A stretch of 64,000 nt of DNA from contig NC_043002.1 in NCBI RefSeq assembly GCF_006345805.1, positions 100,998,001 through 101,062,000 on the forward strand. Direction: 5' to 3'. This DNA comes from Octopus sinensis. Lineage: Eukaryota. Shown here piece by piece: positions 16,211-64,000 of the stretch. A program made the translations under genes and the position numbers. The notes under the pieces were generated by a model. The model had not been told where the DNA came from. It ran no database searches and worked only from the letters and a program-made list of their open reading frames with translations. Each line of letters opens with the position of its first letter. Positions within the stretch are counted from its first letter, which is position 1.

Positions 16211-18859
16211 CTGGAAAGCAATTACATTTCAATGAGCTAAGACTCTTGAATGAATATATATAAGTACGTATTTGTTGAGAACATGCTTAAACAAAAGAAT
16301 TAGAAACAAATAGTTTGATTTCTTTTTTTTTATTATTTGTCTATCATTTTTTTTCATTTAAAATATACAAATATAGTTATTGAATTCAATGAAAAAGAAA
16401 ATAATAGTTACAAACAAGTTCATCACCATCGTCATTTAACATCCGTTTTTTTATGCTGCAATGGTTTGGATGGTTTGATAGGAGCTGGTAACCTAGAGAG
16501 CTGTACTAGGCTCCATGTCTGTTTAGGCATGGCTTCTATGGCTGGATGCCCTTCCTAACACCAACCACTTTACAGAGTGTACTGAGTGCTTTTTACAAGG
16601 TACCAGCAAGATATGTATATATAAAAAAAAAACAGTAAAAAATGGACCCATAAGATTAAGTAAATGTCTAGTGAAGCTTCTAAGAGAAGACATGGCTTCC
16701 TTAGCAATCCTCCTCTTTTTTTCTGTGAGATTACACAATTTGATTACTGAATATCACTTGTAATTCTGTAAACATTAAATTTCTTGCCTTGATGTGCTTC
16801 AGAAATCATCATTAAATAAAGTATTGGCAGAATTTAGTGCCACACAAAATAGTTTTCTTCTTTTCTATGGTCTTAGAAAAGGAGTGTTAATGTTAGCTGT
16901 GAGGACAATCAATGTGTGTGTGGTGTGTCTGTGTGTCTTAGGTCAACTTTGTTTTTCATCCTTCTGGAGTTGATAAAATGCACTACTAACCCCTTCTTAC
17001 AAATTTCTGACCTTGTGCCTATGTAAAAAAAATCCATATCATTAGAAAGTGGTGTGACAAAATTCCACTACATATCCAAAGACCTAGTATTCAGTAACTA
17101 TGCTAATAATAAGTTTTATAGATTGTTACAAAAACATTTGATTTCAGAATAAAATGAGACATAACTAGCAACACAGAAGGGAGCGGGCATGGGGGTGGAG
17201 GGTGTAGAGCAGCTTCAGTTAACCTTATTTTGGGACTGGATTTTTTAATCTCTACAGGATTTGAACCTTGAACATAAGGTTATGTACCAAAATACTGCAA
17301 GGCAAGTAGTTTCAGGTTCAGTCCCACTGCATGGCACCTTCTGCAAGTGCCTTCTTCTATGGTCCTTGTAAGCAAAGCCTTTTATCTTTTTCTTGTTTCA
17401 GTCATTTGACTGCAGTTATGCTGGGGCATCACCTCGAAGGGTTTTAGTCAAAAGCCTAGTACTTACTCAGTTGGTCTGTTTTGCTGAACCGTTAAGTTAT
17501 GGGAACATAAACATACCAACACTGGTTGTCAATTGGTGGTTGGAGACAAACACAGATACAAAGAAACAAACATGAAAAAAGCTGAAAAAGTATGCCATGT
17601 GTGTGTACAAGAGAGAAGACTGCACTGGTGTGATCATGTGATGTGCAGTGGAGATGACAGTTGCATAACGAAGTGCCAGCAATTAAATGCAGAAAGAGCT
17701 GTGGAACGAAGAAGTGAAGTAGTCATCTCCTCTGTGTTGAGTCTCATGGGGTGGATGACAAAAGCACCAAGATGACTGGTGATTTGCTGTTCTTGAGAAC
17801 ACCTGTCCATTTCATATAATTTGTCTATGTCCCTGCACCCAGTCTGTCCCTGACATGCCTCTTCCCTACAACTCATTCTCCTAACACCACTCCTATTCAC
17901 CATAGTCTTTCAGGTTATAACAGAAAAGTTTGAGGTTGGCTGCCAATGGCAACTCTGCTTTGCTGGTGACCGAGTTCCTATAGCCGAAGTAGATTTCAAC
18001 ACCATCTAACATTCATTGTCTATGCTGGCATGGGTTGGACAGTTTAACCAGGGTTGGCAAGCTGGAACACTGCACCAGACTCCATTCTGATTTAGCATGG
18101 TTTCTAAGGCTGGATGCCCTTCCTAATGCCAACCACTCCAAGAGTGTAATGGGTGCTTTTATGTGCATCACATTGCCAAACCAGTGGTCTTCTCTCTTGC
18201 ACACTATATTTAATTCCTCTTATGCCAAACTTTTCTCTCAATACACTAGTACTTTGTCATTGCACATTTAACAGAGGATTGTAAACTGTTAAAAAGGCAA
18301 AGCAGATACACAACAGAAGAGATTACAGAGAATCAAATTGTCAGACCAGGTTAGGAAAGTTATTGAAAGAGTTAATATTACAAGATTGATTAGGAACAAG
18401 TCTAAATGAGATGTGATTGGGCTTTATACCAGGAACAGGTACAATTAATATCATCTTCCTAATGAGATTACTGCAAGAGAAGAGCTTAGTAGTAAGCCTG
18501 TATATGTAACGTTCATAGAGTTGGAGAAGAACTTTGGTAGTTTGGTCATCAGGTGGTTCTTAAGGAAATAAAGAGTAGAAGAATGGCTTGTGCAGCTGTA
18601 CATGCTATGTACAGAGGTGTTGTCAGCAAAGTGAGAGTTAACAAAGAGTACAACAACACATTAAGTGTGCAAGTTGGGACCCGTTAAAACTTGGTCGTCA
18701 GCCCTCTTCTGTTTATGGTCCTGTAAGTTATGAAGTGTGTTTTCAGGTTTAGTCCCACTACTTGACACCCTGAGAAAGTGTCACCTAGAATGTACATCAT
18801 AAAACTAAACCACTGCCTGCTGTCCTCTACTGGTCAGATATTAGAAATGTGGACCCACT

Positions 18860-24755: not shown

Positions 24756-27330
24756 GTGTGTACTATGTCGAATCCACGAGAAGCAAAAGTGAGGAAAATT
24801 TCTGATTTCTTCATTACTTCGTCACATCCAAAGAATCCAGGAGCATCGGATATTGTGGAGGTGCAACTCAACAAATCTTTATATATAAAAGTGAGGTTGT
24901 GTGGTGTCTGTCTCCTACGATTCAGATTCCTAACTACTCCCACATTTTACGGTGCAGTTTAACCAAAACCGGGTATCTTATAGACGTGATTCATATCGAA
25001 CCCTTCTGGGTATTAGTGCGCGTCTACGATGAGTCTACGATTTAAAAAAAAAATTACCATAATTTTTTTCCATTTTAATGCATTTTTTCGCTATTATATA
25101 AGGGAAGTAACTCTCTAAAAATGTCTACGATGAGTCAACGATTAAAAAAAAAATTACCATCATTTTTTTTCCATTTTTAATGCATTCTTTTGCTATTTTT
25201 TGGCTATAACTCTCTAAAAATGCTTATATAGTTATTTCCCTTACAAACCCGAGCAACGCCGGGCGATACTGCTAGTTATTGATAAAGCTCTTCCAGTAAA
25301 TCGCGATATCCCATCGAAATATTGCACATCAACTGAACAATTCGTGCTAAGTGAAACATTTGAATTTCCCAAGGATGCAAAAAAAACCGTTCATGTCGCT
25401 CAGATTGGTTTAAAGAGAACCCATGGCTTCATCATGATATTCAGTATGATGTTGTTATCTGCTGGTATTGTCTTGAAAGAGTTCGGGCTAACAGGATTCC
25501 ATCTCCCAAGGAAACTGCCTTTTTGACTTGTGTAAGAAACTGGGGCAAAATTACTGCAAAAATTGCTGCACATAGCCGTTCTGGTCCCCATATAAACGCT
25601 ATCCGCACTTTTCGGTTGGAGACAGGTATATATCTGACTCTGAATAAGCAGGTGATTCAGCAACAAGAAGTAACCCGGTAAGCTTTAAAAATTATTTTCA
25701 AAGTAGTTAGATTTTGTGGTAGACAAGGCCTAACATTACAAGGGCATGACCACGATATGGGAAACTTTGTAAATCGCGTAAGGGAACTTGCTGAAGAATG
25801 CAGTGCAGAAGTAAGTCAGTGGTTTAAGCGCCGGGACAATTTCCTCTCTGATACAATTCAAAATGAAGTTTTAGAGGCATATGCTCATAACATATTACAT
25901 GAGATCAAAATAAAAGTAGAAAATTCCAGGTTTATTGGCATTATATGTGATGGTACCACTGATTGCTCTGGCATAGAACAAGTATCAATCACTGTCCGGT
26001 ACGTTTCTGAAGACCTGAATGTCAATGAGGATTTTCTAGGTTTTTATAATCTCCCTGACTGCTCTTCAGAGACACTGACTAAGATTATTCTGGATGTTTT
26101 TTGTCGCCTAAACATTTCACTTGGCTCAAAGTTATGCTGTTTTTCATTTCATGGTGCAAGTACCATGAGTGGAAACATTTCAGGTGTACAAATGCGATTG
26201 GAAAAATTCGTTCCCAGGTACATATTTTGTACACTGTGGAAACCACTCTCTGGACCTTGTCCTCCAAGAAGTTAGTTCTAAGGTTACCTTTGTAGCTGAT
26301 GCACTGAACTTTGTTCATCAATGTGCCATTCTTGTAAAAGAGTCACCAAAAAGAAAAGCACAATGGGCAAATCTTTGTGGTGAGAATGTCATCATGTTGC
26401 AAGCAGTGTGTCCAACTCGGTGGTACATTAGAGCAACAGCACTGAACGAGCAGAAAACAATTATAAGAATATTCAGAATTTTTTGCTTGACCTTCTTAAT
26501 GACTCGTCGTTAAGAGCAACAACAAAGGCTACTGTTAAAGGGCTGCTAAAACAATCTGGCAAAGCTTCCACTTTGTTCGGCATTAAAATCGCTGGGGATA
26601 TATTTGGAGTATGTGAGCCAGTGGTAATTAGCTTACAGCGTCCAGGCACGACAGCCGGTGATTGCTTGAACTTGATTGAAAAGTTGAAAAACTCTCTTTC
26701 AAAAATGAGAAGTGAGAAGGTTTTTGAAAAATATTTCGATGAAGTATCCCTCTTCTGACTTAGTGAAAATGCCCAACAATTTCGCGATCCAAAAACATAC
26801 CACTGCGCTTTAGGCAGACAACAACTACTGAAGAAGTTGCTCTTTCTGTCACCGATGACTGGCGTCGGCAATTTTTTTCTACAGTGGATGTCATCAAAAA
26901 TGAATTGTCTCACCGGTTTCAGCAAGAGGGAATGCGTGTATGCTCTGAGCGAGAGGAGTTGCTGTTGTCAGCAGTCAATTGTGGAGTATTTAATTTTGAA
27001 AATACACATCTACCTGCTTCTTGTGATTTGCTCTTACTGTAATTTCAAATCAAACTTCTTGCTGGCCTATGGACGGAAAGGGAAACTTTGCTTAAATCAT
27101 TTATTGACATAATTGAGAAATGGAGAGCGTCCGATGCTATTTTTCGTTCTAGTGTGCCACAAGTGTTGGTGTTAATGCAGCTTGTCCTGTCTTCACCTAT
27201 ATCTGTTGTATCAAGTGAAAGAACATTCAGCGCATTTCGCCGTTTGAAGACCTGGCTTCGTACCACAATGACACAGCACCGTCTTACACATTGTGCCATA
27301 ATGCATGTACCTAAAAAAAATATGCGATGA
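24756..27330 (+). pseudogene. hAT transposase (ZMYM1/DUF4371-like), frameshifted
   Basis: TTF-type Zn finger (RSDWFKENPWLH...VICWYC), RQGLTLQGHD, IICDGTTD, HCGNHSLDL, CPTRW and dimerisation motif SSERTFSAFRRLKTWLRTTMTQHRL, spread over several frames. Confidence 0.88.
24876..25275 (+). mobile_element. Non-autonomous Helitron, copy 4, nested in the hAT
   Basis: A|TC...CTAG|T, no TSD. Confidence 0.85.
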
Positions 27331-30557: not shown

Positions 30558-31843
30558 TGAGGGAAATACACCTAAGAGAGGAGCGGTGAAAAATGGTCAA
30601 TTTAGTCTCCATTTGTCAACATTCTTAAAGTCATATCACAAATTCTCCCTCTTCTGTATTTGATACATCCAAGTGTTGTTATTATCGTCTGGTCTTTATC
30701 TTTTAAATGAGCTCTGCACAATACACAATAGTATATTCTTGTGAACAATTCTCTATTTCTCCCAGTTTGCCATTTTCGTTTCTCATATGCTCTGATATAC
30801 CTTGGTGGGCAACCTTGCTACATATATCTCGATAGAAATACCGGTCGATTGTATGCTTAAGCTACACCTCATTTATAAGTGAAAATCTCAAGCAAAATAG
30901 CTAATGCTGATGATGTGAACGAGACTGGAGCCAATGCTGAAGATGTCCTGCCTAGCAGGTGTCTTCTTGTTCAGGGGGTTGGACCTGGCTTAATTCGAAA
31001 TTGGGCTGTTGCAGAAAGTATGAGACTGAAGATCAACGAGAAAAGGATATTGACGGAAAGAAAAGGAAATGAAAAAACCTTAGTGGAAAAGGAGAATGTC
31101 AGAAAATTTAAACTCCCTGAAAAGCGTAGTCTCGATACTTGACAGCAGAATAAAAAGAAAAAGAGAATTCAAGAATGGTTGCAAATTTGAAAAAATTGAG
31201 GAAGTGTCGTGTTAATACAAAACGACTGAATATTGTGACATCTAAGGTTTTCATCGATTATTTCTGGGACTTTGTGCAATAAATGAATAGAAATTTACTG
31301 CAGACGAGCTGTCTCCATACCACTATTCTGCGCTTTTAAGGCAACAATTACAGCGTGCCTTCTCAGTTGCTGAGACATCCTGTGTCTGAAATTAGTTATT
31401 TGAAATGTAAGGTTTAAAAAAAAATTGAATTCGCAAGAAAATCAAAGCTCTTAAAAGAGCTTATATATACTATGATATATATACTATGCTGTGCGGATGG
31501 ATGCAAATTTTTTTTTCTTTTTAGAGGAAAACAATAACCAACATTTTAGCCGTCTCTAGCAATATCAAAACATAAAGCGGAATATAACAGAAGGTAGTGT
31601 TTAATACACAGAACGTCGAATGTGATAAGACACATGATGCAACTATTGAATTATTTAATGAATATTTAATTCAAGCCCAGAAAAAGGAATCTGTGTCACT
31701 ACTCTACGGGGTATTAAAAAAGAAAAAAAGACCTTCATTTGTCAGCTAGTGTTTTATAGCATGTCGTTACAAACCCATTGAATTTCAGGATAATAAAAAC
31801 GGAGATATATTGTCACCAGCTGTTTTGGCGGCATTACAGTAGA

Positions 31844-31878
31844 TATAAATACGCATTGTTTTCGCATTTGTCATTTTT
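31844..31878 (+). promoter_or_regulatory. TATA box (TATAAATA) and initiator (TCATTT) of the novel secreted-protein gene
   Basis: TATA at 31844, Inr A at 31873 (29 nt later), followed 45 nt later by a GTAAGT donor. Confidence 0.6.
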
Positions 31879-31917
31879 TTTTCAATTTTTCTGCGCTGCT
31901 TTCTCCTATTGGCATAC
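31873..31917 (+). other. Predicted non-coding first exon
   Basis: Lies between the Inr and the GTAAGT at 31918; the next exon opens with an acceptor 6 nt before its ATG, so an upstream exon is required. Confidence 0.55.
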
Positions 31918-32169
31918 GTAAGTGAATGTCTATCCATATTTCTTTTTCATAAGGTATTTGTATAATTACATGACTGTTTTTAAATATAGCTCAGAATTTG
32001 TTCATCAATGTTTTCTTATAATACATAATTTGAGAAATGCGTCTAATACAAAGTTATCTGGAAGTATCTTGAAATGGTTTTAATGATTAAGAAGAGAAAA
32101 TATGAGGTCTGTATCTAAACTAATTGTATTTTCTCGGTTTCTGTATGTGAATATATCTCTGTGTGTGTT

Positions 32170-32232
32170 TGTATCCATCCATCCATCCATCCATCCATCC
32201 ATCCATCCATCCATCCATCCATCCATCCATCC

Positions 32233-32297
<65 letters not shown>

Positions 32298-32305
32298 GCT
32301 ATCTA
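32170..32305. repeat. Compound (TCCA)n(TCTA)n microsatellite
   Basis: Directly visible. Confidence 0.95.
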
Positions 32306-32348
32306 TCTAGTTCTAGAAATTGTGTTTCGTAAACGACAGACTATGCTG

Positions 32349-32433
32349 ACACATTCTTCGTGGCAAATGGCGAATTTGACGTTTATTTCTAGCATACAGG
32401 CTGTCCACTATTAGTGGTCATTCCTCTAAATTT

Positions 32434-32469
<36 letters not shown>

Positions 32470-32499
32470 TATAAGCAGTTACACTTATGTACATGCACA

Positions 32500-32534
<35 letters not shown>

Positions 32535-32980
32535 TCTCGTATCTACTTGTATTGCTTCCCTTTCTCTCTGAATTAGAAAACGGTTACTTGTTTGATGTTT
32601 ACGCATCCATATACGTAAATATTAACAAGTGAAACTAATTAGTACATAGGTAATCATTCTTTATTTTGTATATTTTCATTTGTGTGCATATTTTTACACT
32701 TTGGTTTTTTGCTGAATTTTTTCTTGAGAACACATTCTTCGTGGTAAATGGCGAATTTGACGTTTATTTCTAGCATACAGGCTGTCCACTATTAGTGGTC
32801 ATTCCTCTAAATTTTGTATATATATATATATATATACATATATATATTAATTAATAATAAAATATTAGGGAATAAATCCAAACTTACAGGGAAAAAAAAA
32901 AATATATATATATATATATATATGCATATAAGCAGTAACACTTATGTACATGCACACACACACTCTCTCTCTCCCTCCCC

Positions 32981-33017
<37 letters not shown>

Positions 33018-33076
33018 TCGTATCTACTTGTATTGCTTCCCTTTCTCTCCAAATTAGAAAACGGTTACTTGTTTGA
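32349..33076. repeat. Local direct duplication (about 32349-32596 and 32730-33076)
   Basis: ACACATTCTTCGTGG...GGTTACTTGTTTGAT occurs twice, differing mainly in microsatellite length. Confidence 0.9.
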
Positions 33077-33107
33077 TTATTATTTTCAATTGCACTTTCA
33101 GGTCAAT

Positions 33108-33180
33108 ATGACACGGCTACTTCCCATTTGCTCGTTGTTTTTGACTGCATTAACAGCTGTTATGGATGCAGTTGGGATCG
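33108..33180 (+). CDS. Novel secreted Cys-rich protein, coding exon 1 (signal peptide)
   Basis: CACTTTCAG acceptor, AATATG start, MTRLLPICSLFLTALTAVMDAVGI, phase-1 GTAAGT donor. Confidence 0.85.
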
Positions 33181-33335
33181 GTAAGTTTCCAATGAGATAT
33201 AGAAATACTGAATAATTAAACTATTTGAAAATTGCCTGAGCACCAATTCTTTCATCGATTTAATCAGTTACTCTTTACCTGTTTTTAATTGTGTTGCACT
33301 TAATCGATATTTGATTTCCATTATTCTGACTTGAT

Positions 33336-33600
33336 ATACGGGGTAGTTACAAAAGGTTCCAGGACAAATTGTTTTGACTAAAAAGTGAATTTATTCGCCT
33401 AAGATTTAACATCAATCCTTTTTCGAAAGAGTCACCTTAAGCAGCCATAGAGTGATCCCAGCATTTGTGTCACTTTTGGAAGTCGTTTTCCGAGAGAGAG
33501 CGGATGCCCTTCCGCAATTCGATCTGGATCTGATGGAAGTCCGCAGGTGCTAAATCTGGTGAATAGGTTGGGTGTGGAAACCATACCATGTTGTATTTGG
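33336..33600 (-). mobile_element. Mariner 3' end
   Basis: MVWFPHPTYSPDLAPADFH motif; TA|CGGGGTAGTTACAAAAGGTTCC terminus. Confidence 0.65.
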
Positions 33601-34950
33601 TGAGAAACTCAAGAGGAAGGAGAGCTTGGGAATAGCACTGCTGCAGATTGAGAAACAACTGAAGCACACCCATGAGAAGGTAAGATCAGACAGAGAAGCC
33701 TGAGTTAAAAGAAATATAAAATTAGACCCTAAAACCTTCTTTAGGTACGCCAAGGAGACTGCATTGCAGGGTAGGCCCGCTTTTCGCAAAAGATAGCTCT
33801 CTCACGGGAAACCCAATGAGGATAAGTGAAGCACTGAATGAACAGTTTTAAAGTGTCTTCCCCCCACCGCTACGACACATGAAAATTAGCAAACCTGTAG
33901 AAATTTTACCACTACAGAAGCTGAACAGGAGGCAATAACACTTTATTACATCAGCATCGAAGAAAAGGATGTAATGCCGACAATAAATGATATAAATGCT
34001 AACTCAGTGGCTGGCCCTCGTGGATTCCCAGCAATCCTTCTCAAGTCATGCAAAAAAGTCTTTGCAAAAACATTGAAGCTACTTTTTCAGAGCTTCTCAA
34101 ATAGTAAGCTTCCGGACAAACAAAAGGAGGGGATGTGCCTTATCCGTAAAGTAGGAAGCAGATCAGGTGCTAAAAACTATAGGCATATCTCTCTGATCTC
34201 ACACATCAGCAAAGTCATGGAATGAATAGTATGAAGGAAATTAATTGCATTCCTTGAAGAGGATGACTTGCTGACTGATACCCAGCATTGGTTTTCGACG
34301 CAGCTCTTGAAACATTACGACTGGTTGCTAAAGCAGCTTCTCAACAACTCAAGTGTGGACGTGATATACCTCGACTTTGCAAAAGCTTTTTAACGAATCG
34401 ACCAAGGTATGATTTGTCACAAGCCGCATAATCTTGACTTAGCTGGAAAACTTGGAGAATGGTCACCTGACTTTCTAACGGATAAAAGTTAGGTTGTAGT
34501 ACTCAATGTGGCCACCTCTAAAGAAACGCAAATAATGGTGTTCCACATGGCATTGTCTTGGGGCCGTAGTTTTTCATAGGGGCCCTCTCTGACATACTCT
34601 TAGCTGCTCAAGTAGCTACTCCTGCTAGCTATGCAGACGATACAAAACTCTCTCAGAGGATACAGAACACTGGGGTTGTTGCGCATCTACAATGTGAGAT
34701 GGATGCAGTATACAGGTGGGCCGAGGGAAATAACATGCAGTTTAATACTGGAAAATTCCAAGCCCTGTGCTGCCAACACAGAAGCTGAATGAAATGCAGA
34801 TAGGATACATTGGTCGAAGAGTAGTTGCAATCCCCGAATCAAAGACAGTGCGTGACTAGGGCAGCGACATGAGTACTGATACTTATTTTCAGGTACACCT
34901 CATCAAGTTGGCAATGAAATGCAGACGCTTGGCCGGATGGATCATTCTAA
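33600..34950 (+). mobile_element. CR1-like LINE RT remnant
   Basis: KNYRHISLISHISKVME, DVIYLDFAKAF, SYADDTKL, WAEGNNMQFN motifs with stops. Confidence 0.8.
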
Positions 34951-35959
34951 CTTTCGTTTTGTTATATATACACTTTTTGCATTACAACTCACCAAGGATG
35001 GATAACTAAATTTATCTTCTTTCCTTTCCTTCTTACATTGTAAAGAAATTTGACACTTTCTAGGCATGTGTTTATATGTATACAGAAATAGACGGATGCA
35101 TAAGATAGTAAACAATGAATATAACGGGGTAACGGAAATTATATTTCTTAATACGACGAGCAGAAAATAAATAGGAATTTTTTACAAAAAATAAAGAATT
35201 GTACGGGTTGAAGCGAAGCTTGTCGGTGAGCCAAAGAGCCAGTATCGAGGGAACCAGAAAAAAAGCCGTTAACAACAGAAATACACAAAACTATTGCAAA
35301 AATAAATAAGAAATTTTTAGGGAAATTAAATGTACGGTTTTAAGTGAAATTTTTGAAGTTACCTATGTCAGTAACTTATGAACTTATATTTATCAATAAT
35401 TCGTCAAGACAAAAGGTTGCGAAAGTGAATAAGAAATTTGTAGACGAGTTTAACGAAGTATACGATTAAAGTGAAATTCATGAAGTTACTTCTGTCTATA
35501 AATTATGTATGAAATTACTTTCATCAGTAATTGTGAAATTCTTTCTGTCACTAATTTGTTATTGTTGTTTGTAAACAGCGATTGGAAACTTACAGTGAAA
35601 ACAATGGTGATTGATCTTAAAGTAAAAACAATAGCGTCAGAAAAATGAAAGTGAAAACAATAGAGAATGGGTGAGAAATAGAGAGAGGGAGAGAGTTAGC
35701 TAGTTAGACAAATAAAATAGATATAGATAGATAAGATATAGACAGAGATAGATAGTTATAGAGATAAAGATATATGGAGAGGTATAGATAGAGCAATAGA
35801 GATGGATCGGGAGAGATGGATAGAGAGATACAGGCATCGTTGATACTAAACATCCGGAAGTATATGTATGTTAAAAAGCTTTTAAAGACTTGAATCTAAT
35901 ATGAAAACCAATAGTTTTTTAATGATAAATGGATGTAAGGGGGACAATCAATTTCTGAA

Positions 35960-36490
35960 AGTTACTTCGCAAAGAGTTACATCCTTTCTCCACGTAACCC
36001 CGGAACGGGTATTTTTGTTGTTCACTTTCTTTCTATTTCCACTCGGATCTGACCTTTCTAGCAAACATCAATTCTGCGGGTAACATTCCTGATGGTGTAT
36101 TCGGATTGGTTGTTACTCTGTACACACTTAGAAATTGTTGACGCGCAAAATCATCTATCACTTCGTTGTTCGCCCTTTTCAACGCCTTCTTGAAAGTGTC
36201 AACAAGACGCACCACTTGCCCATTTTACCTACGATAAAAGGTCATAGTAGCGTCATGTAGTCGATGACAAACATTTTACAAATTTTTCTGAACTCATCTG
36301 ACATAAACTGAGTTCCATTATCAGACAAAATTCTATCAGGAATACCATATCTAATGAACAATTTGTGTAAAAAGCTTCCTGTAACAGCAGATATCGGCTT
36401 TTTACATTTATGCACTTCCGGCCACGTTGAAAAACTGCCCACCACAACAATGGGATACATGTAATTGACTATTTCCCTCCTCAAAATATT
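35960..36490 (-). mobile_element. Gypsy-type integrase remnant
   Basis: RYGIPDRILSDNGTQFMSDEF...LVDTFKKAL...PAELMFARKVRS. Confidence 0.8.
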
Positions 36491-36509
36491 GCTGCTTTTT
36501 CGGAAAATT

Positions 36510-36515
36510 TGAAAC

Positions 36516-36584
<69 letters not shown>

Positions 36585-36728
36585 CATCATCATCATCATT
36601 AATATTATTATTGCCTTTGCACAGCTTCTAACGCTGGAGATGTACTACAGTGTCAGCTGTTCACTACCAGTGAACTAAGGTAACACCTCTTATTTTTTGT
36701 GCACCTTCCGGAGTATTCGAGCGGTTTC

Positions 36729-36780
<52 letters not shown>

Positions 36781-37190
36781 GTAGTAGTAGCAGTAGTAGT
36801 AGTAGTAGTAGTAGTAATAGTAGTAGTAGTATTGAGTGAGACAGCAGTGCATGTCATCAAAGTGACACTGAGGTAAAATATACGAAGCCCAGTACACTTC
36901 TCATGACTACCCGTCCAATAAGTGTACAGCATATATGCATGACATGGTGATCTCATATCAAGTTTAATAGTGCATGACCTTACATGTGGGGCCCAGTTAG
37001 AATTTTCATCAGCTCGAGCAGCCCATCCCGCTCAATAGGTCCCTGTATAAGGGCTGTTTATAGATGGTGAACGAAACACCCATGTTTCCAAAAGTAAATT
37101 TTCCAAACCCCAAAGAATTCTTCTCAACACATCGCAATGATACTCCCCCACTACTACTTCTACTCAAGATTAGAAATGCACATATCATCA
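36510..37190 (-). mobile_element. (TAA)n arrays with associated LINE-tail elements
   Basis: TARILRKV (RLE-type LINE C-terminus) next to (TAA)n; segment 36830-36960 recurs at 47678-47815, again between (TAA)n tracts. Confidence 0.55.
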
Positions 37191-37995
37191 ACCACCAAGG
37201 GACATGCTCAAATGGTTAAGGTCAAACAACTGACAAGCAAATCTGTGGTATTGAGCAGAATATTTGCCGTAGCCCATCGTTTATACCAAGACAAAACAAT
37301 GTACTTATTATTGTTGTTGTTGTTGTTGTTACTAGTTCTATTTTTTAGTATTGATGTATGTAAGCTAGCAAATAACAGCTACACCAAAACCTGAATACCG
37401 GTGTTTCCTGCACTTTACCAGTTCGCTTCAACTACGCACGTGAGTAGGAGAAACCTTTGCTCTTTGCTCTTTTAGGTAGCTCTTTTACTTGTTTCAGTCA
37501 TTTGACTGAGGCCATGCTGGAGCACCGCCTTTAGTCGAGCAAATCGACCCCAGGACTTATTCTTTGTAAGCCTAGTATATATACGACAGGCGTCTTTCAG
37601 TTTCAAGGCTTTGGTTGGCCCGAGGCTATAGTAGAAGACACTTGCCCAAGGTGCCACGCAGTGGGACTGAACCCGGAACCATGTGGTTCGTAAACAAGTT
37701 ACTTACCACAGTGCCACTCCTACGCCTATGTGCCACTCAACCTATATGTTCATTAAATTGGTATCACTATACTCCTCACAATTATTTGTTTCTATCAAAA
37801 CAGGACTGGAAAAAGAAGTAAAAGATCCGACTGAATTTCATATACGGATTGGAATGAAGCAAAGGATATTATCTAAGTTGGATATTATTGGAATCAAGTT
37901 TACATTCTCCTAGTTGATTATAAATTTACGTTAGGAAATATCCACAATATAACATACTCTTTAGTAGATATATTAATATGTGTATTTTTATCTAG

Positions 37996-38133
37996 AGTGT
38001 CATGGATGTTTAATGAATGGTAAATGCTACCGTTTCGGAGAGAGTTGGGAGGAAAAGACAGAAATTATGTGTGACGTGAGAAGATGCATTCGTCTAAATG
38101 AAAAGCAATGGAAAGTAACCGTACAAAAAGTGT
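37996..38133 (+). CDS. Novel secreted Cys-rich protein, coding exon 2 (module 1, phase 1/1)
   Basis: TTTTTATCTAG acceptor; (E)CHGCLMNGKCYRFGESWEEKTEIMCDVRRCIRLNEKQWKVTVQKV; GTAAGT donor at 38134. Confidence 0.88.
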
Positions 38134-38869
38134 GTAAGTTGCCAAAGAATATTTTTGTATCCTCCCTTCATTACACGTTTTCAAAAAGCAAAACCTCAAC
38201 GATGATTTATATTATGTTTGTTTAATTTTTTAATGCGACAGCCCAAGTTTGGCAACTGTTTATTACTGACCATCTGCCGGCATTAATTGTGAAACTGATG
38301 TACGACAACTCAAAGATATAAACGATGGACTCTTAGTTTGTTTAACTCGATTGACAAACGTTAATGTCCAACGGGATACCGGTCTTCTGAATCGTGTGAA
38401 AGGTTCATAGGCTTTCTAAGGGTTTGAACTCAGTGCGTAACGAAATGTAGCTGAACACTACACATTCTTTTAGCTCGTGCTCTAACGATTCAGGTGAGCT
38501 GGCAGTAGAATAATTAGCATTTCGGACAGAATGCTCAACGGCATTTCTTCCAGATCTTTACGTACTGAGATTAAATCATGCCGTGTTTAACACCGCTTTT
38601 CGTCTTCGAAGGGACGAAATTTAAGGGAGCAGTCTAATATCGACAAAATATACTGGATTCATCTCCTCAAAAATTACTGGCATTGAAACCCGTAATAGAT
38701 AGACCTCCCGTTTACAGGGATCTTCGTCGCTTAAACGCCATGGAAACTGGGATACCGGTCTTCTGAATCATGTGAAAGGTCCATAGGCTTTCTAAGATAC
38801 TCTCAAAGATATGTGACCGAATGAAATTCAGTATAGTACCCCAAGCGGTCAACACATTTATTTCATCAG

Positions 38870-39720
38870 AGCTTCTCTGTTTCGATCCAATGGGTGAAGA
38901 AGTTTTCTTTTTATCCGTCAAAAAAGTCGTCAACAGGAGAATAGGAAGGGTGATTAAACAGTTCTAAACAACATTCACACGTATCAGCTATTGAAAATAA
39001 CGACTGTGTTTCAGTACTGTTCTGATGAAACAAAACATATTTTGTCAGTTTTCCTGGGAGCTTGGTCTTGACAGTCTTTCGTAACGACCTCAACTTCGCT
39101 TAGTATTCTCTATCGATGGTATTGCCCTTTTGAAGATAGTCAATAAACACACTATCTTCATCTTTTCAGAACTTGAAACCTTCATCTTCCTTGGCTTTCT
39201 TCGGAGCAGGTGAGGAGGGGTGTTTCCAGTACATGGAATGTTTCATTGACTCTGTCTAAAAGTGATGAATATAATGCACTCCTGATTTCAAGGAAACCAG
39301 CTGAATTTGCCTCATACAATGTCAGATATTCCCGTGATGTGATCAGCTTGTTGCGCTTTTGATCAGGTGTCAGATGACGTTAGTCCCACCGGGCAGAAAC
39401 CTCCATCATGCAAAGTCTAATGTTCGGAATATGATCAATTCTCTCATAGGATATGCGAATCTCATTGGCTGTTTGGTTTATCGTCAATCGCCTCTCATCC
39501 ATTATCATGGGTTGAACACTATCAATGTTTTCGTTGATGGTGGTAGTTGCAGGACGTTCAAACATTGGGTCATATTCAAGACCCTCACTTCCCCTCCTGA
39601 ATTCAGCTGCCCACTTTTGCACTGTTGGTTGATAAAGCTGGGTTATCACCCCCAAATATAGCAATCATGCCAGCAGGAATATCCTCGGCACCAGATTCCT
39701 TCACTGCAAATACTTGATAA
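38870..39720 (-). mobile_element. Decayed mariner transposase
   Basis: TVQKWAAEFRRG...ERPATTTINENID...VSARW, IDYLQKGNTI and NHPSYSP motifs. Confidence 0.75.
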
Positions 39721-40209
39721 TATTTATTCCTTTTCAAGAAAAAAATCATAATTACTTTTGAAAACTACTTTGATCACTCAGATGTCAGTTTACCCGAAGA
39801 AAAACAAGCAATAAACATCAATAAACCAGACATGCAGTTATTAATATGAAGATTTGAAATTAATGCATTCAATTTATCGCTGCTCTATTATCACTCCTTC
39901 ATTGTCAGCCTATGAACTTTCCTCGTATGTGTTTCCATATCGGAGGTTTATTCTAGAACATGAAAATCGAAACTAGTGATTTGCAAAGATAATCGCTTGA
40001 TTTATTCTTAGAATTAGCACCCCGGTATCTATCTACACACACACACGCACACACACATACACACACAGAAACACACACACACACACACATACATACACAC
40101 ACACATATATATATATATATGTATGTATATGTGTGTGTGTCTATATATATATATAGAGAGAGAGAGACACACAAGAAGTGTACTGTATATATACATATAT
40201 ATAACTTAG

Positions 40210-41045
40210 AAAGGTTTTGGCCAGTATTGGCCCAGGCCATGTCTAACTTAATAGCTCCACCTGGCGAAGTCTTTCAATTCAGGATTTGGGTACCAAGGCC
40301 TATTCGAGCAGAGAGTTATTGTTTGCGGAGACATATCCGGGTGTGGGTGTTTGAAGGAATTTGCCCAAAGACTTCTTGAATTTTGTGTGGTCAGTTTCTG
40401 TTTTGACGTGTCCTGGTGTAATATTGAAGAGAGCGGGTTCAATTGAGGTGAAATAATTGTGCCGTATTGTTGTTATGAGATGCGAATTAAATTTTTGTTG
40501 TGGACGGATGGCACGTGGTCCAAACCTTGGATGTATTTTGAAGGTGATGCCAACATCATTTGGACAGTACTGATGGAATATTTTCTACATCATACAGATA
40601 ATGTAGCGTTCACGGTGTCGTTGGAGTGAATACAGTTTCAGCTTTTCTAGTCGACCCCAGTAGTCGAGGTCTGACATGCCATCTATCTATTTTGTGATTG
40701 ACCTTTGGGGAGCTTCAATTCTCATAATATTTTGTTTCGTGTAGGGAGACCACAGTGGACAGCAGTATTCCAGGTGGGGTCGAGCAAACGTGGAGAAGGG
40801 AAGGATAATGGTGTGGGAATCTCTCGGCTGGAAGGTTCAGAGAATCCAGGAACACATTCTGCGGGCCATGTCAACTTTGCTGCTTATATGTGTTGCCCAG
40901 CTTATGTTGTTGTCCACAGTTACTCCCAAGTCTCTGATGTTGTTAGACGGCATGAGAATTTCTCCAGAAGGAAGGGAGTTTCAGAATGTCCTCCCTTCCA
41001 AAGTGGATCAGTTCGAATTTGTCTTCGTTTAGCAACATGTTGTTC
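40210..41045 (-). mobile_element. CR1-like LINE 3' end
   Basis: NEDKFELIHFG...IRDLGVTVD...RPHLEYCCPLWSP...LDYWGRLEKLKLYSLQR. Confidence 0.85.
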
Positions 41046-41084
41046 TTTTCCGCCCATAATATATATATAATGTATATATGTATG

Positions 41085-41153
<69 letters not shown>

Positions 41154-41444
41154 TGTTCTTCAAATTTTCTTTGACGTATCTAAAATATTTTTCCTATATT
41201 AACAAAGTCAAACATCCAACTTAATTTAACTTAATCCAACTTAATTTAGATTCTTGGCCGTGCATAATGTCCTTGAGCGATTTACTTTATTTCACATTGC
41301 CCCCATTCCATTGAGCAGGAAAAATTAGTTGTACTTGTAATTCAAAGAATTCGCTCTATCCCATTCTGAAACTACGATAATGGCACGCGTGCCTCTGATG
41401 TTCTCAGCCACTTACACGTCAGTTTTATGAGCAGGAGTTTCTTC

Positions 41445-42096
41445 TTTCTTTATTGCCCACAAGGGGCTAAACATACAGGGAACAAACAAGAAGAGACAAG
41501 CGGATTAAGTCGATTATATCGACACCAGTGCGTAACTGGTACTTAATTTATCGACCCCGAAAGGATGAAAGGCAAAGTCGACCTCGGCGGAATTTGAACT
41601 CAGAACGAAACGGCAGACGAAATACCTATTTCTTTACTACCCACAAGAGGCTAAACACAGAGGGGACAAACAAGTACAGACAAACGGATTAAGTCGATTG
41701 CGTCGACCCCAGTGTGTCACTGATGCTTAATTTATCGACCCCGATAGAATTAAAGGTAAAGTCGACCTCGGCGGAATTTGAAATCAGAACGCAGCAGCGG
41801 TCGATTTACTACAAAGCACTTCGCCCGGCGTGCTAACGATTCTGCCAGCTCGCCGCCTTTACCTATTTCTTTACTACCCACAAGGGGCTAAACACAGAGG
41901 GGACAAACAAAGACAGGCAAACGGATTAAGTCGATTACATCGTCCCCAATGCGTAACTGGTACTTAATTTATCGACCCCGAATGGATAAAAGGCAAAGTC
42001 GACCTCAGCGGAATTTGAACTCAGAGCGTAACGTCAGACGAAATACGGCTACGCATTTCGGCCGGCGTGCTAACGTTTCTGCCAGCTCACCGCCTT
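41445..42096 (-). mobile_element. Three head-to-tail SINE family B copies
   Basis: CCCACAAGGGGCTAAACA...GTCGACCTCRGCGGAATTTGAA repeated three times. Confidence 0.85.
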
Positions 42097-42665
42097 ACGA
42101 GTAGAAGTTTATGTCGAGCAGATCAAGAGGAATACTCGACGTTGTAACCGGTTTCATGCCAATTTTACACTTATAACCGAAGAGAATGCTTCAAATAGCT
42201 TTCATGCGACCGGTGTATATGTCAATTGAAATGCCTGCTATCTCTCCTTAAAATCGAGGCACAGAACATACACACATTTACTTTAATCTATTCCGATTTT
42301 AGGAATATGAACTCAAGATATAAAATTCCTAATAAATTACGTTTAATAAATATATAGTCAAGAAAGATTCTGATTGAAACGGTTAACTTGCAAAATAGTT
42401 AGCACGCCCAGGCAAAATGTTTATCGGAATTCTTTCTGCTTTTCGGATTTGACTTCAAGTTCTGCTGAGGTTGACTTTGCATTTGAAGCCTTCCAGGTCA
42501 ATAAATTAAGTAGCTATGGTGAATTAGAGTCGATATGATCGAATTACACGATCCCCTAAAATTGCTGGCCTTTTGCCAGTCTTTAGCAATTATAGGTATG
42601 ATTAAGTCAAGTACAGTTACTTTATAGAGTAATCTAGATATTGCTTGCTTTCTTATCAACAACAG

Positions 42666-42808
42666 TTTGTCGGCAGAATGATGGCAAATGTGTTGGGAAC
42701 AGTGAAACTTGGCCACTCTTAAAAGACGGTGAATGTTGGACTCGCAGGTGCAAAATTTGGGAAGATAAACGCATTGAAATCATATCAGAATTAGCGGAAA
42801 ATTGTTAA
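42666..42808 (+). CDS. Novel secreted Cys-rich protein, coding exon 3 (module 2 and stop)
   Basis: TTTCTTATCAACAACAG acceptor in the required phase; (F)CRQNDGKCVGNSETWPLLKDGECWTRRCKIWEDKRIEIISELAENC*; paralogous to exon 2; GTAAGT donor 5 nt after the stop. Confidence 0.88.
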
Positions 42809-44676
42809 GTAAAGTAAGTATATATTTTAAGCTATCTAATTTAGTTTATTCCCCTCCACGTTACTGTTGAGTTGCCCTCGTAACACACGTCCTCTTCTAT
42901 TCCACTTCTAACTCCAGTTAGCTTTCATTCAGATATAAAAATACAATCGTAAATATTTTCAGTTACATGTTCCAACTGAAAATATGTGTCTTTTTTTGTC
43001 GGGCTACAGATTGATAAAATATGGTCGGTAGAAGGTTAGCTTCTGGTACCAATATCCAAAAGTCAAGTTTCTTCCATGTGCTTTTCGATCCTGAAGTTTC
43101 TGGATCGTGGTGTCAAGTGTATATAGACATATAGTACGTTAAACTTAATAGCACCAAATGGATATAATCTGTTAAGTTTTCTGGTATCGTAACATTCAAA
43201 TAGCGAGACGATATTGACTGAGACTTATCCAGGCATAGATAGCTTATCTCCCATCCTTTCAAGAAATTTGTTCAGATACCATTGGAAGTAATGGGATCGA
43301 TTTCCTCTTTGAATTGCTTTGCAATCATGTCAAATACTGCAGAGACATTTGGAGAAAATGTAATTTGGTTGTCCTGTAAGAGGGTCAGCTGAAGCTTTCA
43401 AAGGCCGACCAAAATACTCTCATGGAATGTGACCAAAGAGTTTTAATTTTTAACATATTCCGGTCAACACTTTTCTTCCATTGGTGTTGCAATTATTCTA
43501 AAGAATAATATGTATCACAGAGTATTCACAGCGTACAGTGAATAGCATGAGAAAAAAGATGTCATGACTTGGTCGTTGAATAAATGACCATTTCTGAATA
43601 TTTAAGTTTTGTATCTATTACCTTTTAGTTGGGATATGAGGCTGTAATCTGTCCTAGTAGAAATGTCTAGTGGCGCAGAGCATTTCGGGCCAGAGCCAAC
43701 CATAAGTATGACTACAAACATAAGATATTTTGTGAACATAATAAATAACAGAACTCTCACCTCTTAGACACATTAGCAGAGACAATAAAGTTCAATCTAA
43801 GCAAGGGACTTATAATTAAGAAAAATCTACGTTGATATTCCTAATATAAGGGTGCTAGGGGATCAAAGAAAATCATCATCATTAAGCCGGGAACAACAAT
43901 TTTTGACCTTACACAACTTTATTGATATAATTAGGTAGATAAGTTATATTTTTATTAAATATAACTCGTCCAGAAACTAGCTGATACCATCACGTATAAA
44001 CTACATGTGTGTGTATGTATGTTTGTCTTTGTGTTTGTCCCGCTCCACTGCTTGACAACCTGTGTTGGTGTGTTTACGTGCCCTGTAACTTAGTGGTTCA
44101 ATATATAGTGCCTATATGTTTGTCATGTGTTTGTATTTGTCTAAATTGAGCAGGAAAAAAACCCCGAAGTATATTTTAATTCATCAATGAGATTAACCTG
44201 CTTGATAAATCTATGCAGCTGGAAATTGAATGTAGCGCAGTCATAACTTTATTGTTTAATGGCATTTAATTGCAGTAAAATTTACAGTTTTATAATTAAC
44301 GACGCTAACCAAATTTATTTGGTAATAATTGTTCTTGCTATATATATATATATATATAAATAAATGTTCTATATTTTTTCTACTTTTATAGAAATATAAA
44401 CAGATCGATCTAAATCTGAAACCATTGTCGAAACCAAAACGAAAATCAGTTTGCTATAAACTGATAAAGAAGAAGAATTATACCGGATTAAGATATTAAC
44501 ATTATCTCATATAATCTCCACTGAAACAGGTGTATTAATTAACGTAATAAACTAATTTCCGAATGAACACCTCTATTTCTTTCTGTTTTGTTTTTCTTTT
44601 GTGATCTTTATAACAGTTAGAAACCAATAGAAGGAAATTTTGATTAAAAAGCAGGTGTATGTATAACAGGTGTATG

Positions 44677-60460: not shown

Positions 60461-61189
60461 AATAAATTTACTCCTTGGCATTTCAAGACATCTTTATGTA
60501 ATTTTGGTAAATGTATCTTGTTTCACGCGCGGAGTTGCTTGTTTACTGGGGCTAAGCCATTCCTTACGCTACTTCATATTGATGTACAAGCACCATTTTT
60601 CGTCGCCAGTAACGATTCCGTAAAGAAATCGTTGCTTGTGTTCAGAAGTTGAGCGGTGTGGAGCAAGCAAACCAGCAGAGATTATGGCTCGTTGATTTTT
60701 GTTGTTGTCACTTAAAGCATGCGGAACCCATGCCCCATACTTCTGAACCTTTCCCATCGAGCGAAGATGCTTCTCCATATCAGTGTGGGAGCATTCCACT
60801 CCTCTGCCACTTCCCTTGTCGTTTGACGAGAATTTTCGTGCAAAAGTTGGTTTAATCGCTTTTCATCGAACTCAACTGGACAGCCAGAATGAAGTGCGTT
60901 TTTGAGGTCAAAATGTCCATTATTGAACTTGGCATACCAATCACGAACGCTTCTTTCAGCTATGGTACCCTCTCCATAAACAGCACAAATGTCGCGATCA
61001 GCTTTTGTGGTCTTAGAACCTTGATTAAAATCACAAAGAAGATGTCGAAAATGGTCGTTTTTCTTAACTTGACATTCCATTTTAATAATCTGAAAATAAT
61101 CAAAAATTAACTAAAATTAACTAGAAAAAAAATAGATTCTAAAATTTAAAAACCAAATTTTAGAAAACGGCAGGAACTTAGTTGCCAAC

Positions 61190-62195: not shown

Positions 62196-64000
62196 GCGGT
62201 AGTAGGAAATTGTATCAGACTACGAAAAGAGAAGCTAGGAGACAGTTTTATTTAGCCAGAGGGGAAGCAGATAAGAAAAAAATTTGCCAATGCTCTGCGC
62301 CGTGAGGACCAAAGACTTGAAGTATTTCGTGCTGCAAGACAGTGTGTGCGAGAGAATCGTGATGTGGTAGGAGAGAAATGTGTCTGCATGGATGATGTTT
62401 CACTTGCACTAAATGAGGATGCAAAGAGAGAGGTTTGGAGATGCCACTATGAAAGGTTGCTCAAAAAAGAGAATGAATGGGATAAAGAGAGTCTGCCGAA
62501 TGTCGACCCAATAGAGGGACCAGCTATCCGAGTTGACAGTTCCATAGTAGTTAAGGCAATTAGAAGCATGAAGACAGGGAAAGCCCCAGGCCCATCAGGA
62601 ATTACTGCTGAGATGTTCAAAATATCTGGCAGTGTCGGCTATAGCCTAGTCACCCGTATACTTAACCAGGTGATACATGAAGGAGTCATACCCAATGACT
62701 GGTGTAGTAGCATAATAGTCAACTGCTACAAAGGTAAAGGTGATGCTCTAGATACAAGTAATTACAGAGGTATCAAGCTGTTGGATCAGGTAATGAAGGT
62801 TACGGAAAGGGTCATAGCCCAGCTGATTAGGGAGAGAGTCAACCTGGACGAGATGCAGTTTGGTTTCGTGCCAGGGAAAAGCACCACCGATGCCATATTT
62901 CTGGTGAGACAGCTGCAGGAGAAATACCTAGCCAAAGATAAAACTCTGTACCTGGCTTTCGTTGACTTGGAGAAAGCCTTTGACAGGGTCCCCTGATCCC
63001 TTATCTGGTGGTCAATGAGGAAACTAGGGATAGATGAATGGTTAGTGAGAGCTGTGCAAGCCATGTACAGGGACGCTGTTAGTAAGGTGAGGGTTGACAA
63101 CGAGTACAGTGAAGAATTCCGGGTTGAGGTTGGCGTCGACCAAGGCTCAGTCCTCAGCCCCCTCCTATTTATCATAGTCCTCCAGGCAATAACGGAGGAA
63201 TTCAAGAGAGGATGTCCCTGGGAGCTCCTCTATGCTGATGACTTTGCTCTAATTGCTGAGTCACTATCAGAACTGGAGGAGAAGTTTCAGACGTGGAAGC
63301 AAGGATTAGAATCGAAGGGCCTCAGAGTCAACCTAGCTAAAACCAAAGTCCTAATAAGTAGGAAGGTAGACAAATCACAAACGCCTTCGGGTAGATGGCC
63401 CTGCTCGATCTGTAGAAAAGGCGTAGGCAGGAACTCTATAAGATGCACCAAGTGTAAGCTATTGACACATACGAGGTGCAGCAATGTCAAAGGAAGGCTA
63501 ACTAGGAATATAGTTTTTGTATGTGGCAGATGCTCTGGTGCAATAAACACTGAAAATGCGCAGAGACCATCTTCCGCCACATTCCAGGGAGAAAAACTAG
63601 AAATACTTGATAGTTTCCGTTACCTAGGTGATCAAGTCAGTAGCGGAGGCGGGTGTGCCGAAAGTGTAACTGCTAGAGTAAAAATAGCCTGGGCAAAGTT
63701 CAGAGAGTTCTTACCTCAAAGGCCTCTCGCTCAGAATAAAAGGCAGACTGTATGACGCACGTGTACGAACAGCCATGCTACATGGCAGTGAAACATGGGC
63801 CGTGACTGCTGAGGATATGCGTAAGCTTGCAAGAAATGAAGCCAGTATGCTCCGATGGATGTGTAATGGCAGTGTTCATACCCGACAGAGTGTAAATGCC
63901 TTGAGAGAAAAGTTGGACTTAAGAAGCATCAGATGTGGTGTGCAAGAGGGGCGTCTACGCTGGTATGGAAACGTGGTAAGAATGGATGAAGATAGTTGTG
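62196..64000 (+). mobile_element. RTE-clade LINE RT region, lightly disrupted, runs off the window
   Basis: Long RT ORFs (216 and 246 aa) separated by one TGA; LLYADD; internal C4HC3 module; frameshift near 63716. Confidence 0.93.

Follow-up and report, generated by a model that had tools for sequence, protein, structure and literature searches.

The gene and its coding exons

A stretch of 64,000 nucleotides of the Octopus sinensis genome (positions 100,998,001 to 101,062,000 of contig NC_043002.1, assembly GCF_006345805.1; hereafter the window, in whose own numbering all coordinates are given) carries on its forward (+) strand a predicted five-exon octopus gene, composed of a TATA/Inr promoter, a non-coding exon 1, three coding exons and an exon for the 3' untranslated region (3'UTR). 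The coding sequence occupies nucleotides 33108-33180 (73 nt), 37996-38133 (138 nt) and 42666-42808, which when spliced in a script translate into a protein of 117 residues; the stop codon TAA (42806-42808) is located inside the third coding exon. All the splice borders are canonical GT/AG, i.e., GGGATCG/gtaagt, tatctag/AGTGTC, AAAGTGT/gtaagt and caacag/TTTGTC (here and below the slash marks the junction), and both introns between the coding exons are in phase 1. Exon 2 (33102-33180) starts with six nucleotides of 5' untranslated sequence (GTCAAT), after which the start codon (33108) opens the part for the signal peptide, 24 codons and one nucleotide long; the exon ends in phase 1. Exon 3 (37996-38133), a phase 1-1 exon with the same borders as in the models of the paralogues and of the orthologue, encodes a first module (ECHGC...VQKV, cysteines 1-5), and exon 4 (42666-42813) encodes a second module, (F)CRQNDGKC...AENC, with cysteines 6-10, and ends at a conserved donor, GTAAA/GTAAGT, at 42813/42814.

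The precursor consists of a signal peptide of 23 residues, with a mean Kyte-Doolittle hydropathy of 2.17 over residues 4-19 and one cysteine of its own, and a mature chain of about 94 residues (11.2 kDa) with ten cysteines spaced C-x2-C-x5-C-x14-C-x4-C-x16-C-x6-C-x14-C-x4-C-x17-C. For this mature chain an isoelectric point of about 7.6 was computed, and no N-glycosylation sequon was present. The splice junctions are supported by homology; each of the three coding exons is matched by separately annotated octopus proteins, with tblastn E-values of 1e-9 to 1e-12 for paralogues and of 1e-19 to 1e-21 for the orthologue. When the protein and all its relatives were used as tblastn queries, just these three exons were found, so that the 64-kb window holds no second family member; an Rfam scan of the whole window gave no match. 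An earlier note, made from the letters of this DNA, had joined these exons in phase (1/1) into a 117-residue secreted protein with a signal peptide and ten mature cysteines. The script reproduced that protein exactly, the orthologue uses the same junctions, and the signal peptide and the cysteines can be read in the sequence and are common to the relatives.

The orthologue and the annotation of the locus

The orthologue of this gene is LOC106872088 from O. bimaculoides. Its full-length product, XP_052825015.1 (P0015, 123 residues, named "uncharacterized protein"), shows 78% identity with the window protein. In it the signal peptide is followed by IEC.GC..., and ...KKV by FCRR..., with junctions that coincide with those of the window gene. 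The orthologue locus (L006) is syntenic with the window over promoter, exons and introns. Another O. bimaculoides entry, P0001 (A0A0L8IEY6), is likewise 78% identical; its model is truncated at the N terminus, and it shares a 90% cluster with XP_052825015.1. The window is about 97% identical to the O. vulgaris sequence OX597819.1 (94-98% over long stretches of locus L001), which retains the three coding exons undamaged and differs by two amino acids; the protein encoded by exon 3 is identical in both.

Neither the exact 117-residue protein nor its O. vulgaris version was found in a collection of 15 billion sequences; therefore, the gene is effectively unannotated in its source genome. Likewise, no product that was exact or at least 90% identical was present in the protein collections searched, and an exact-match look-up returned no record for P0001 or P0013 (the latter a paralogue isoform). 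Having been described as unannotated, the gene deserves this label as far as the exact protein is concerned, and also in view of the chimeric O. vulgaris model described below; the label does not extend to the orthologue and the paralogues, which are annotated as "uncharacterized protein LOC...".

The O. vulgaris annotation (OX597819.1) includes a 112-residue "hypothetical protein" (P0002) that is a chimera of a fragment of a DUF4371 transposase open reading frame (presumably of the hAT type), the signal exon and the stretch just 5' of exon 3; its transposase part matches window 25757-26275, and its final stretch runs into a stop codon. If this model represented the true product of the locus, i.e., a transcript made of upstream exons, the signal exon and an exon 5' of exon 3, the ten-cysteine protein would not be made. 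The model was produced by an annotation pipeline and shares the acceptor and the donor of exon 2 with the 117-residue model; moreover, its block 5' of exon 3 is unusually conserved and has a good acceptor, with an AATAAA after it in most paralogues. Nevertheless, its 5' exons come from the transposase fragment, the signal peptide would be buried in the middle of the protein, and the frame of the alternative exon shows five non-synonymous changes versus one synonymous when the window and O. bimaculoides are aligned and counted. In three paralogues an in-frame TGA also interrupts it, and the NCBI models of the orthologue and of six paralogues all use exons 3 and 4. We regard it as highly improbable that the 112-residue model is the real product; a gene for the ten-cysteine protein would be compatible with a minor isoform that terminates in the conserved block.

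The block in question lies at the 3' end of intron 2 (37740-37995, + strand) and gives blastn identities of 71-78% with six paralogue loci (lowest E-value 1e-53). Directly 5' of exon 3, 230 nt of the intron are 69-87% identical between most paralogues, versus 60-74% for the coding sequence. The block contains an acceptor-like aaaacag/GA, a polypyrimidine-TAG and, in most copies, the sequence ATAATAAAT (an AATAAA). Its role could be that of an alternative terminal exon, or of an element that acts in splicing or regulation. A coding exon within the block was considered and rejected, given the non-synonymous excess and the TGA codons mentioned above; from the latter it follows that the frame is not conserved as coding sequence.

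Promoter and first exon

The TATA box (TATAAATA) can be read directly at 31844-31851 (+), and the TATA block TTACAnTAGATATAAATACGCAT is identical in the orthologue locus L006 of O. bimaculoides and in the paralogue locus L005. An initiator-like TCATTT is found at 31871-31876. Because its A lies 29 nt past the first T of the TATA box, exon 1, which is non-coding and of about 45 nt, was placed at about 31873-31917 (+), and we infer that transcription starts at this A; the exon would end at the donor CATAC/GTAAGT at 31917/31918. This donor is kept in L001, L006, L005 and L007, with a spacing of 70-74 nt between the TATA box and the donor in three loci, and the form CATAC/GTAAGTGAA is identical in the orthologue and in the paralogue LOC128248057. 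Window 31733-31925 aligns with the orthologue at 90% and with LOC128248057 at 70%, in the latter about 4 kb 5' of the ATG. Furthermore, the acceptor of exon 2, tttcag/(G/A)TCAATATG, directly 5' of the ATG, is kept in the paralogues; therefore, an upstream non-coding exon appears to be a trait of the family. The TATA/Inr promoter with a short non-coding first exon, also proposed in the earlier note, is thus supported by the position of the TATA box and by the conservation of the block and of the donor in orthologue and paralogue.

In the O. vulgaris reference (L001, about 17330-17345), 22 bp (TACAGTAGATATAAATACGCAT) are deleted in comparison with window 31835-31856, TATA box included. This gap is flanked by GCATT microhomology, and the block is intact in the window and in the orthologue and paralogue from O. 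bimaculoides. The gap could be a promoter-disabling allele, a species difference or an assembly error.

Intron 1 (window 32149-33082) contains (ATCC)n/(ATCT)n microsatellites at about 32173-32310, as well as a tandem duplication with a unit of about 250-350 bp, whose copies (32349-32601 versus 32730-33082) are 94-98% identical. The duplication stops about 20 nt 5' of the acceptor of exon 2, and O. bimaculoides appears to be single-copy in this respect.

The 3' end

The window protein differs from its orthologue in the way it ends. In O. bimaculoides the sequence reads TGT TAC GTA AA/gtaagt and is then spliced to a last exon that encodes KKLY followed by a stop, whereas the corresponding codons of the window are TGT TAA. 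The TAA is shared by the window genome and O. vulgaris, versus TAC (Tyr) in O. bimaculoides (window 42803-42821; L006 16160-16180); therefore, the protein stops at its last cysteine and the YVKKLY tail is lost. The downstream donor and the last exon are retained in the window as untranslated sequence. The probable exon 5 (44392-44570, + strand, with an approximate 3' end) would contain 3'UTR only, with the acceptor cttttatag/ at 44391/44392 and an AATAAA at 44546-44551, and its alignment with the last exon of LOC106872088 is 85% identical, with the acceptor and the AATAAA both kept. The conservation of the donor at 42813/42814, of the acceptor and of the AATAAA indicates that the gene probably has this fifth exon, wholly 3'UTR, beyond the coordinates assigned earlier. 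The view that the gene is complete to 42813 is thus right for its coding part and has to be corrected for its end, since 42813 is a conserved donor and exon 5 probably extends from 44392 to about 44570.

Intron 4 includes a single-copy block of 488 bp (43005-43492) that is 91.6% identical to the O. bimaculoides intron, as compared with about 80-87% for the neighbouring intron sequence; it has no open reading frame longer than 49 residues and no Rfam match, and is absent from the paralogue loci.

A family detected in octopus

A profile search with HMMER against 1.84 billion representative sequences recovered nine octopus proteins, with E-values from 2.5e-18 to 2.8e-09 for the full-length paralogues. 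Two other matches, repeat proteins of 1052 and 812 residues, were taken as spurious, given that they showed no sign of the ten-cysteine framework. The members from O. bimaculoides are LOC106872088 (the orthologue), LOC128248056, LOC128248057, LOC128248060 and LOC106872057, together with two older UniProt models, and those from O. sinensis are LOC115212787, LOC118763783 and LOC118763691, the last of which came from a separate search. In these searches the family was detected only in Octopus. At least four of the O. bimaculoides members are located inside about 340 kb (106.93-107.27 Mb) of one chromosome.

Judged by similarity, by its cysteine and tryptophan residues and by gene structure, the predicted window protein is a member of this LOC106872088-like family of secreted ten-cysteine proteins. 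It is 36-51% identical to the paralogues, and seven uncharacterised octopus genes besides the orthologue share with it the three-coding-exon structure, the signal peptide and the ten cysteines. The full-length members have their ten cysteines aligned, with the same spacing, and the tryptophan residues are conserved; in module 2 none of the five cysteines varies in the nine rows of the alignment, and those of module 1 are kept wherever the sequence covers them. A signal peptide of the type MTRL(F/L)P is common to the full-length members. Likewise, a signal exon and two module exons with the same borders and phase-1 introns are found in L002, L004, L005, L006, L007 and L008.

As compared with its paralogues, the window copy ends right after the last cysteine, whereas several of them carry basic or Pro/Thr-rich C-terminal tails that derive from extra exons; several paralogues also end shortly after the last cysteine. 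In the isoforms P0009, P0010 and P0013 of LOC106872057 the signal peptide is joined straight to module 2, skipping module 1, which leaves an odd number (five) of cysteines. This could be either real exon skipping, which the 1-1 phase permits, or the result of incomplete models.

Every member of the family carries the name "uncharacterized". In a literature search by identifiers and peptide strings, no paper was found that names any of them, nor anything relevant on octopus cysteine-rich secreted proteins. Membership of an already characterised family, which the earlier note had named as a reason to set its proposal aside, is therefore not the case here, the family itself being uncharacterised.

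Internal repeat and predicted fold

Comparison of the two halves of the mature chain with hhalign gave an alignment of 38 columns (P = 5e-4) with Cys/Trp/Cys/Cys in register, from which it can be deduced that the module was duplicated internally and that each exon holds one copy. Two schemes of disulfide pairing are compatible with this register of the repeat. On the basis of their sequences, the two halves, each encoded by one phase-1 exon, are diverged copies of each other. Modules encoded by phase 1-1 exons, together with a phase-1 intron at the boundary of the signal peptide, are usual in secreted modular proteins (PMC8001218).

A structure was predicted with AlphaFold2 for the O. sinensis paralogue P0014. 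The model has a mean predicted local distance difference test score (pLDDT) of 84, which exceeds 93 over the mature part, and is all-beta, with 2+3 strands followed by a second three-stranded sheet. A model of the N-terminally truncated fragment of the orthologue was discarded (pLDDT 55). When the P0014 model was compared with the PDB using Foldseek, essentially all the top places were taken by tandem pairs of fibronectin type I (FnI) modules, i.e., 8-9FnI (E = 3-4e-4; 3gxe_B, 4e-4), 2-3FnI and 4-5FnI, with the entries 3ejh, 2cku, 1fbr and 3cal, in alignments of about 90 columns with a probability of 1.0. In this predicted model each module of about 45 residues shows the two- plus three-stranded antiparallel sheet that characterises the FnI fold. 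The octopus protein would thus resemble FnI pairs in that no other solved structures match the family model better over the full length of the mature chain, in the size of its modules (about 45 residues), in having about one module per phase 1-1 exon, and in a stretch of the type G-x-x-(Y/V)-x-x-G-x-x-W. It differs from them in that each half has five cysteines instead of four, which in FnI modules are bonded 1-3 and 2-4, and has a different spacing, with C-x4-C in place of C-x-C, and in that it is a free-standing protein of two modules rather than part of a large matrix protein. FnI modules have been described in tunicate and vertebrate fibronectins (PMC5006582).

The only Pfam family to appear in the searches was VWC, with 14.9 bits for the window protein (E = 0.035) and 15.7 bits for module 1 (E = 0.018; profile positions 1-26), scores that are well under the gathering threshold of 27.6 bits for this family (PF00093). 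This raises the question of whether the protein could be a divergent VWC (chordin-like) or single-VWC protein, acting as a binder or modulator of growth factors of the BMP/TGF-beta type or as a cytokine like Vago of arthropods. The VWC and chordin-like repeats, including the single-VWC proteins of arthropods, are secreted domains of similar size that also have ten cysteines, and module 1 holds a G-x-x-Y-x-x-G-E-x-W motif, of a kind seen in VWC domains. Nevertheless, even the weak match was obtained with just two of the nine members, and no aligned member has CxxCxC or CCxxC, the hallmark motifs of VWC. In addition, the second half of the octopus protein is a repeat of the first, unlike the disulfide-knotted and strand-poor subdomain 2 of VWC, and no VWC structure was present in the top 50 Foldseek matches. 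We thus consider a VWC protein unlikely. The N-terminal subdomain of VWC has the same 2+3-strand layout as FnI, and its likeness to fibronectin has been noted (PMC2683937), which explains the faint VWC signal. From the predicted model, the octopus protein may be described as a new, free-standing variant of a module like FnI or VWC subdomain 1.

Sequence searches of the PDB gave matches at chance level (serine hydroxymethyltransferase, E = 0.7; termicin, E = 1.7). Beta-microseminoprotein (PSP94/MSMB), a fast-evolving, beta-rich secreted protein of about 94 residues with ten cysteines, was also considered, and it was dropped because no PF05825 match was obtained at E <= 10 and no MSMB structure was present among the Foldseek matches; the octopus cysteine pattern also differs in that it lacks a CC pair.

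Evolution of the gene and its relatives

The coding sequence of the window gene differs from that of the O. bimaculoides orthologue by 39 substitutions in 351 nt, 30 of them non-synonymous and nine synonymous, which gives non-synonymous and synonymous rates (dN and dS) of 0.115 and 0.142, and a dN/dS of 0.81. In spite of these changes the frame is free of stops, and all ten cysteines and five tryptophans are unchanged. Neutral simulation (200,000 runs, matched for the number and type of changes) gave this outcome with P = 0.014 when the lack of stops and the retention of the cysteines were asked for, and P = 0.004 when the tryptophans were included. For pairs of paralogues dN/dS ranges from 0.34 to 1.95, and it is above 1 in many of the pairs that include the window gene. 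Thus, the cysteines, the tryptophans, the signal peptide, the promoter and part of an intron are conserved, and the exons of the mature chain change at a non-synonymous rate that is about equal to the synonymous one. Toxin, immune and reproductive gene families show such a combination, in which the scaffold is fixed, the signal peptide and non-coding parts are conserved and the mature surface changes fast.

These rates could also be those of a decaying or dispensable copy, i.e., an incipient pseudogene whose reading frame persists only for lack of time. In favour of this are the dN/dS obtained with the orthologue (the value with O. vulgaris is 0.49, from three changes only) and the coding exons, which hardly exceed the flanking introns in conservation. 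To this can be added the change from TAC to TAA that drops six C-terminal residues present in O. bimaculoides, the missing TATA box of the O. vulgaris reference and the fact that the gene was not called in the annotation of the source genome. On the other hand, three genomes have an undisrupted frame, whose 351 nt contain no insertions or deletions, and the retention of ten cysteines and five tryptophans through 39 substitutions is not what neutral drift would readily produce, as the above simulations indicate. The splice sites, the promoter block and the poly(A) signal are conserved as well. The new stop falls after the last cysteine and would therefore leave the fold untouched, in the same way that several paralogues end soon past this residue. 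Decay of the gene is considered improbable.

Other features of the window

The window also contains remnants of transposons. Reverse-transcriptase open reading frames (RVT_1) are present at 5850-6260 and at 62346-63755, the latter with a PHD finger, and a fragment with a Mos1-type (mariner) helix-turn-helix is found at 60712-61080. The DUF4371 transposase fragment at 25757-26275 is the one fused to the signal exon in the O. vulgaris annotation.

Proposed function and significance

The window contains a genuine gene of an octopus family, and from the whole of the evidence we favour the idea that it codes for a secreted binding protein with two FnI-like modules. According to the predicted model, the protein would be secreted and would fold into two rigid beta modules stapled by disulfide bonds. 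It may act as an extracellular binding protein, in which a fixed FnI-like scaffold would display surface residues that change rapidly, and its partner could itself be changing fast, as would be the case for molecules of prey or pathogens, for gametes or for signals between conspecifics. By analogy with FnI pairs, binding would probably take place through exposed edges of beta strands. A role in saliva, mucus, immunity or reproduction is hypothetical, as are the candidate roles named in the earlier note, i.e., saliva or venom, mucus, egg or chemosensory.

Several points weigh against this proposal. The structural model is that of a paralogue, P0014, which is 45% identical to the window protein, and it was obtained with a family alignment of nine rows. 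The TM-scores (template modelling) of the FnI pairs, normalised by the target, are moderate (0.46-0.55). The Pfam profile fn1 (PF00039) gave no match at E <= 10 with the protein, with the nine family members or with the separate modules. The hhalign comparison with human FnI modules 1-5, whose sequences were checked against PDB chains, was weak (P = 0.36 for module 1; P = 0.005 over 31 columns for module 2), and the resemblance is therefore one of fold and not of demonstrable sequence homology. The proposed mechanism of binding is an analogy. As regards evolution, a dN/dS near 1 is also expected under relaxed constraint, and the pattern of conservation by itself fits equally well a surface under relaxed constraint together with a conserved intronic element. 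In addition, the loss of the TATA box from the O. vulgaris reference means that the gene may be dispensable, and there is no Logan or transcriptome contig on record that encodes the family.

A more specific proposal, which at present is rather doubtful, is that the family represents diversifying octopus effectors or recognition proteins built on an FnI-like module, e.g., components of saliva or venom, immune binders, gamete-recognition proteins or chemical signals. If the proteins were effectors, the combination of a conserved signal peptide, introns and promoter with hypervariable mature exons could reflect an arms race, by analogy with the toxin genes of cone snails and snakes.

To our knowledge FnI modules occur in chordates only, and octopus is a mollusc. 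If the fold match between the octopus protein and FnI pairs reflects common descent, modules of the FnI type would exist outside chordates; if it does not, the two would have converged in a clear-cut way, down to the layout of one module per phase-1 exon. Lineage-specific families of cysteine-rich secreted proteins are common in molluscs, hence finding one more is no major surprise. With this analysis the locus, represented in the public O. vulgaris annotation by a chimera fused to a transposon, receives a correctly built gene. It also defines a small, previously undescribed and apparently octopus-restricted family, for which it offers a structural hypothesis, i.e., two FnI-like modules stapled by disulfide bonds. 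A fixed scaffold in a protein whose surface, and even its coding sequence taken as one, changes as fast as the adjacent intron, or faster, is typical of proteins that face outward, towards prey, pathogens, mates or conspecifics, and the family provides a list of candidates to be looked for in the proteomes of saliva, mucus, egg coat and reproductive tract.

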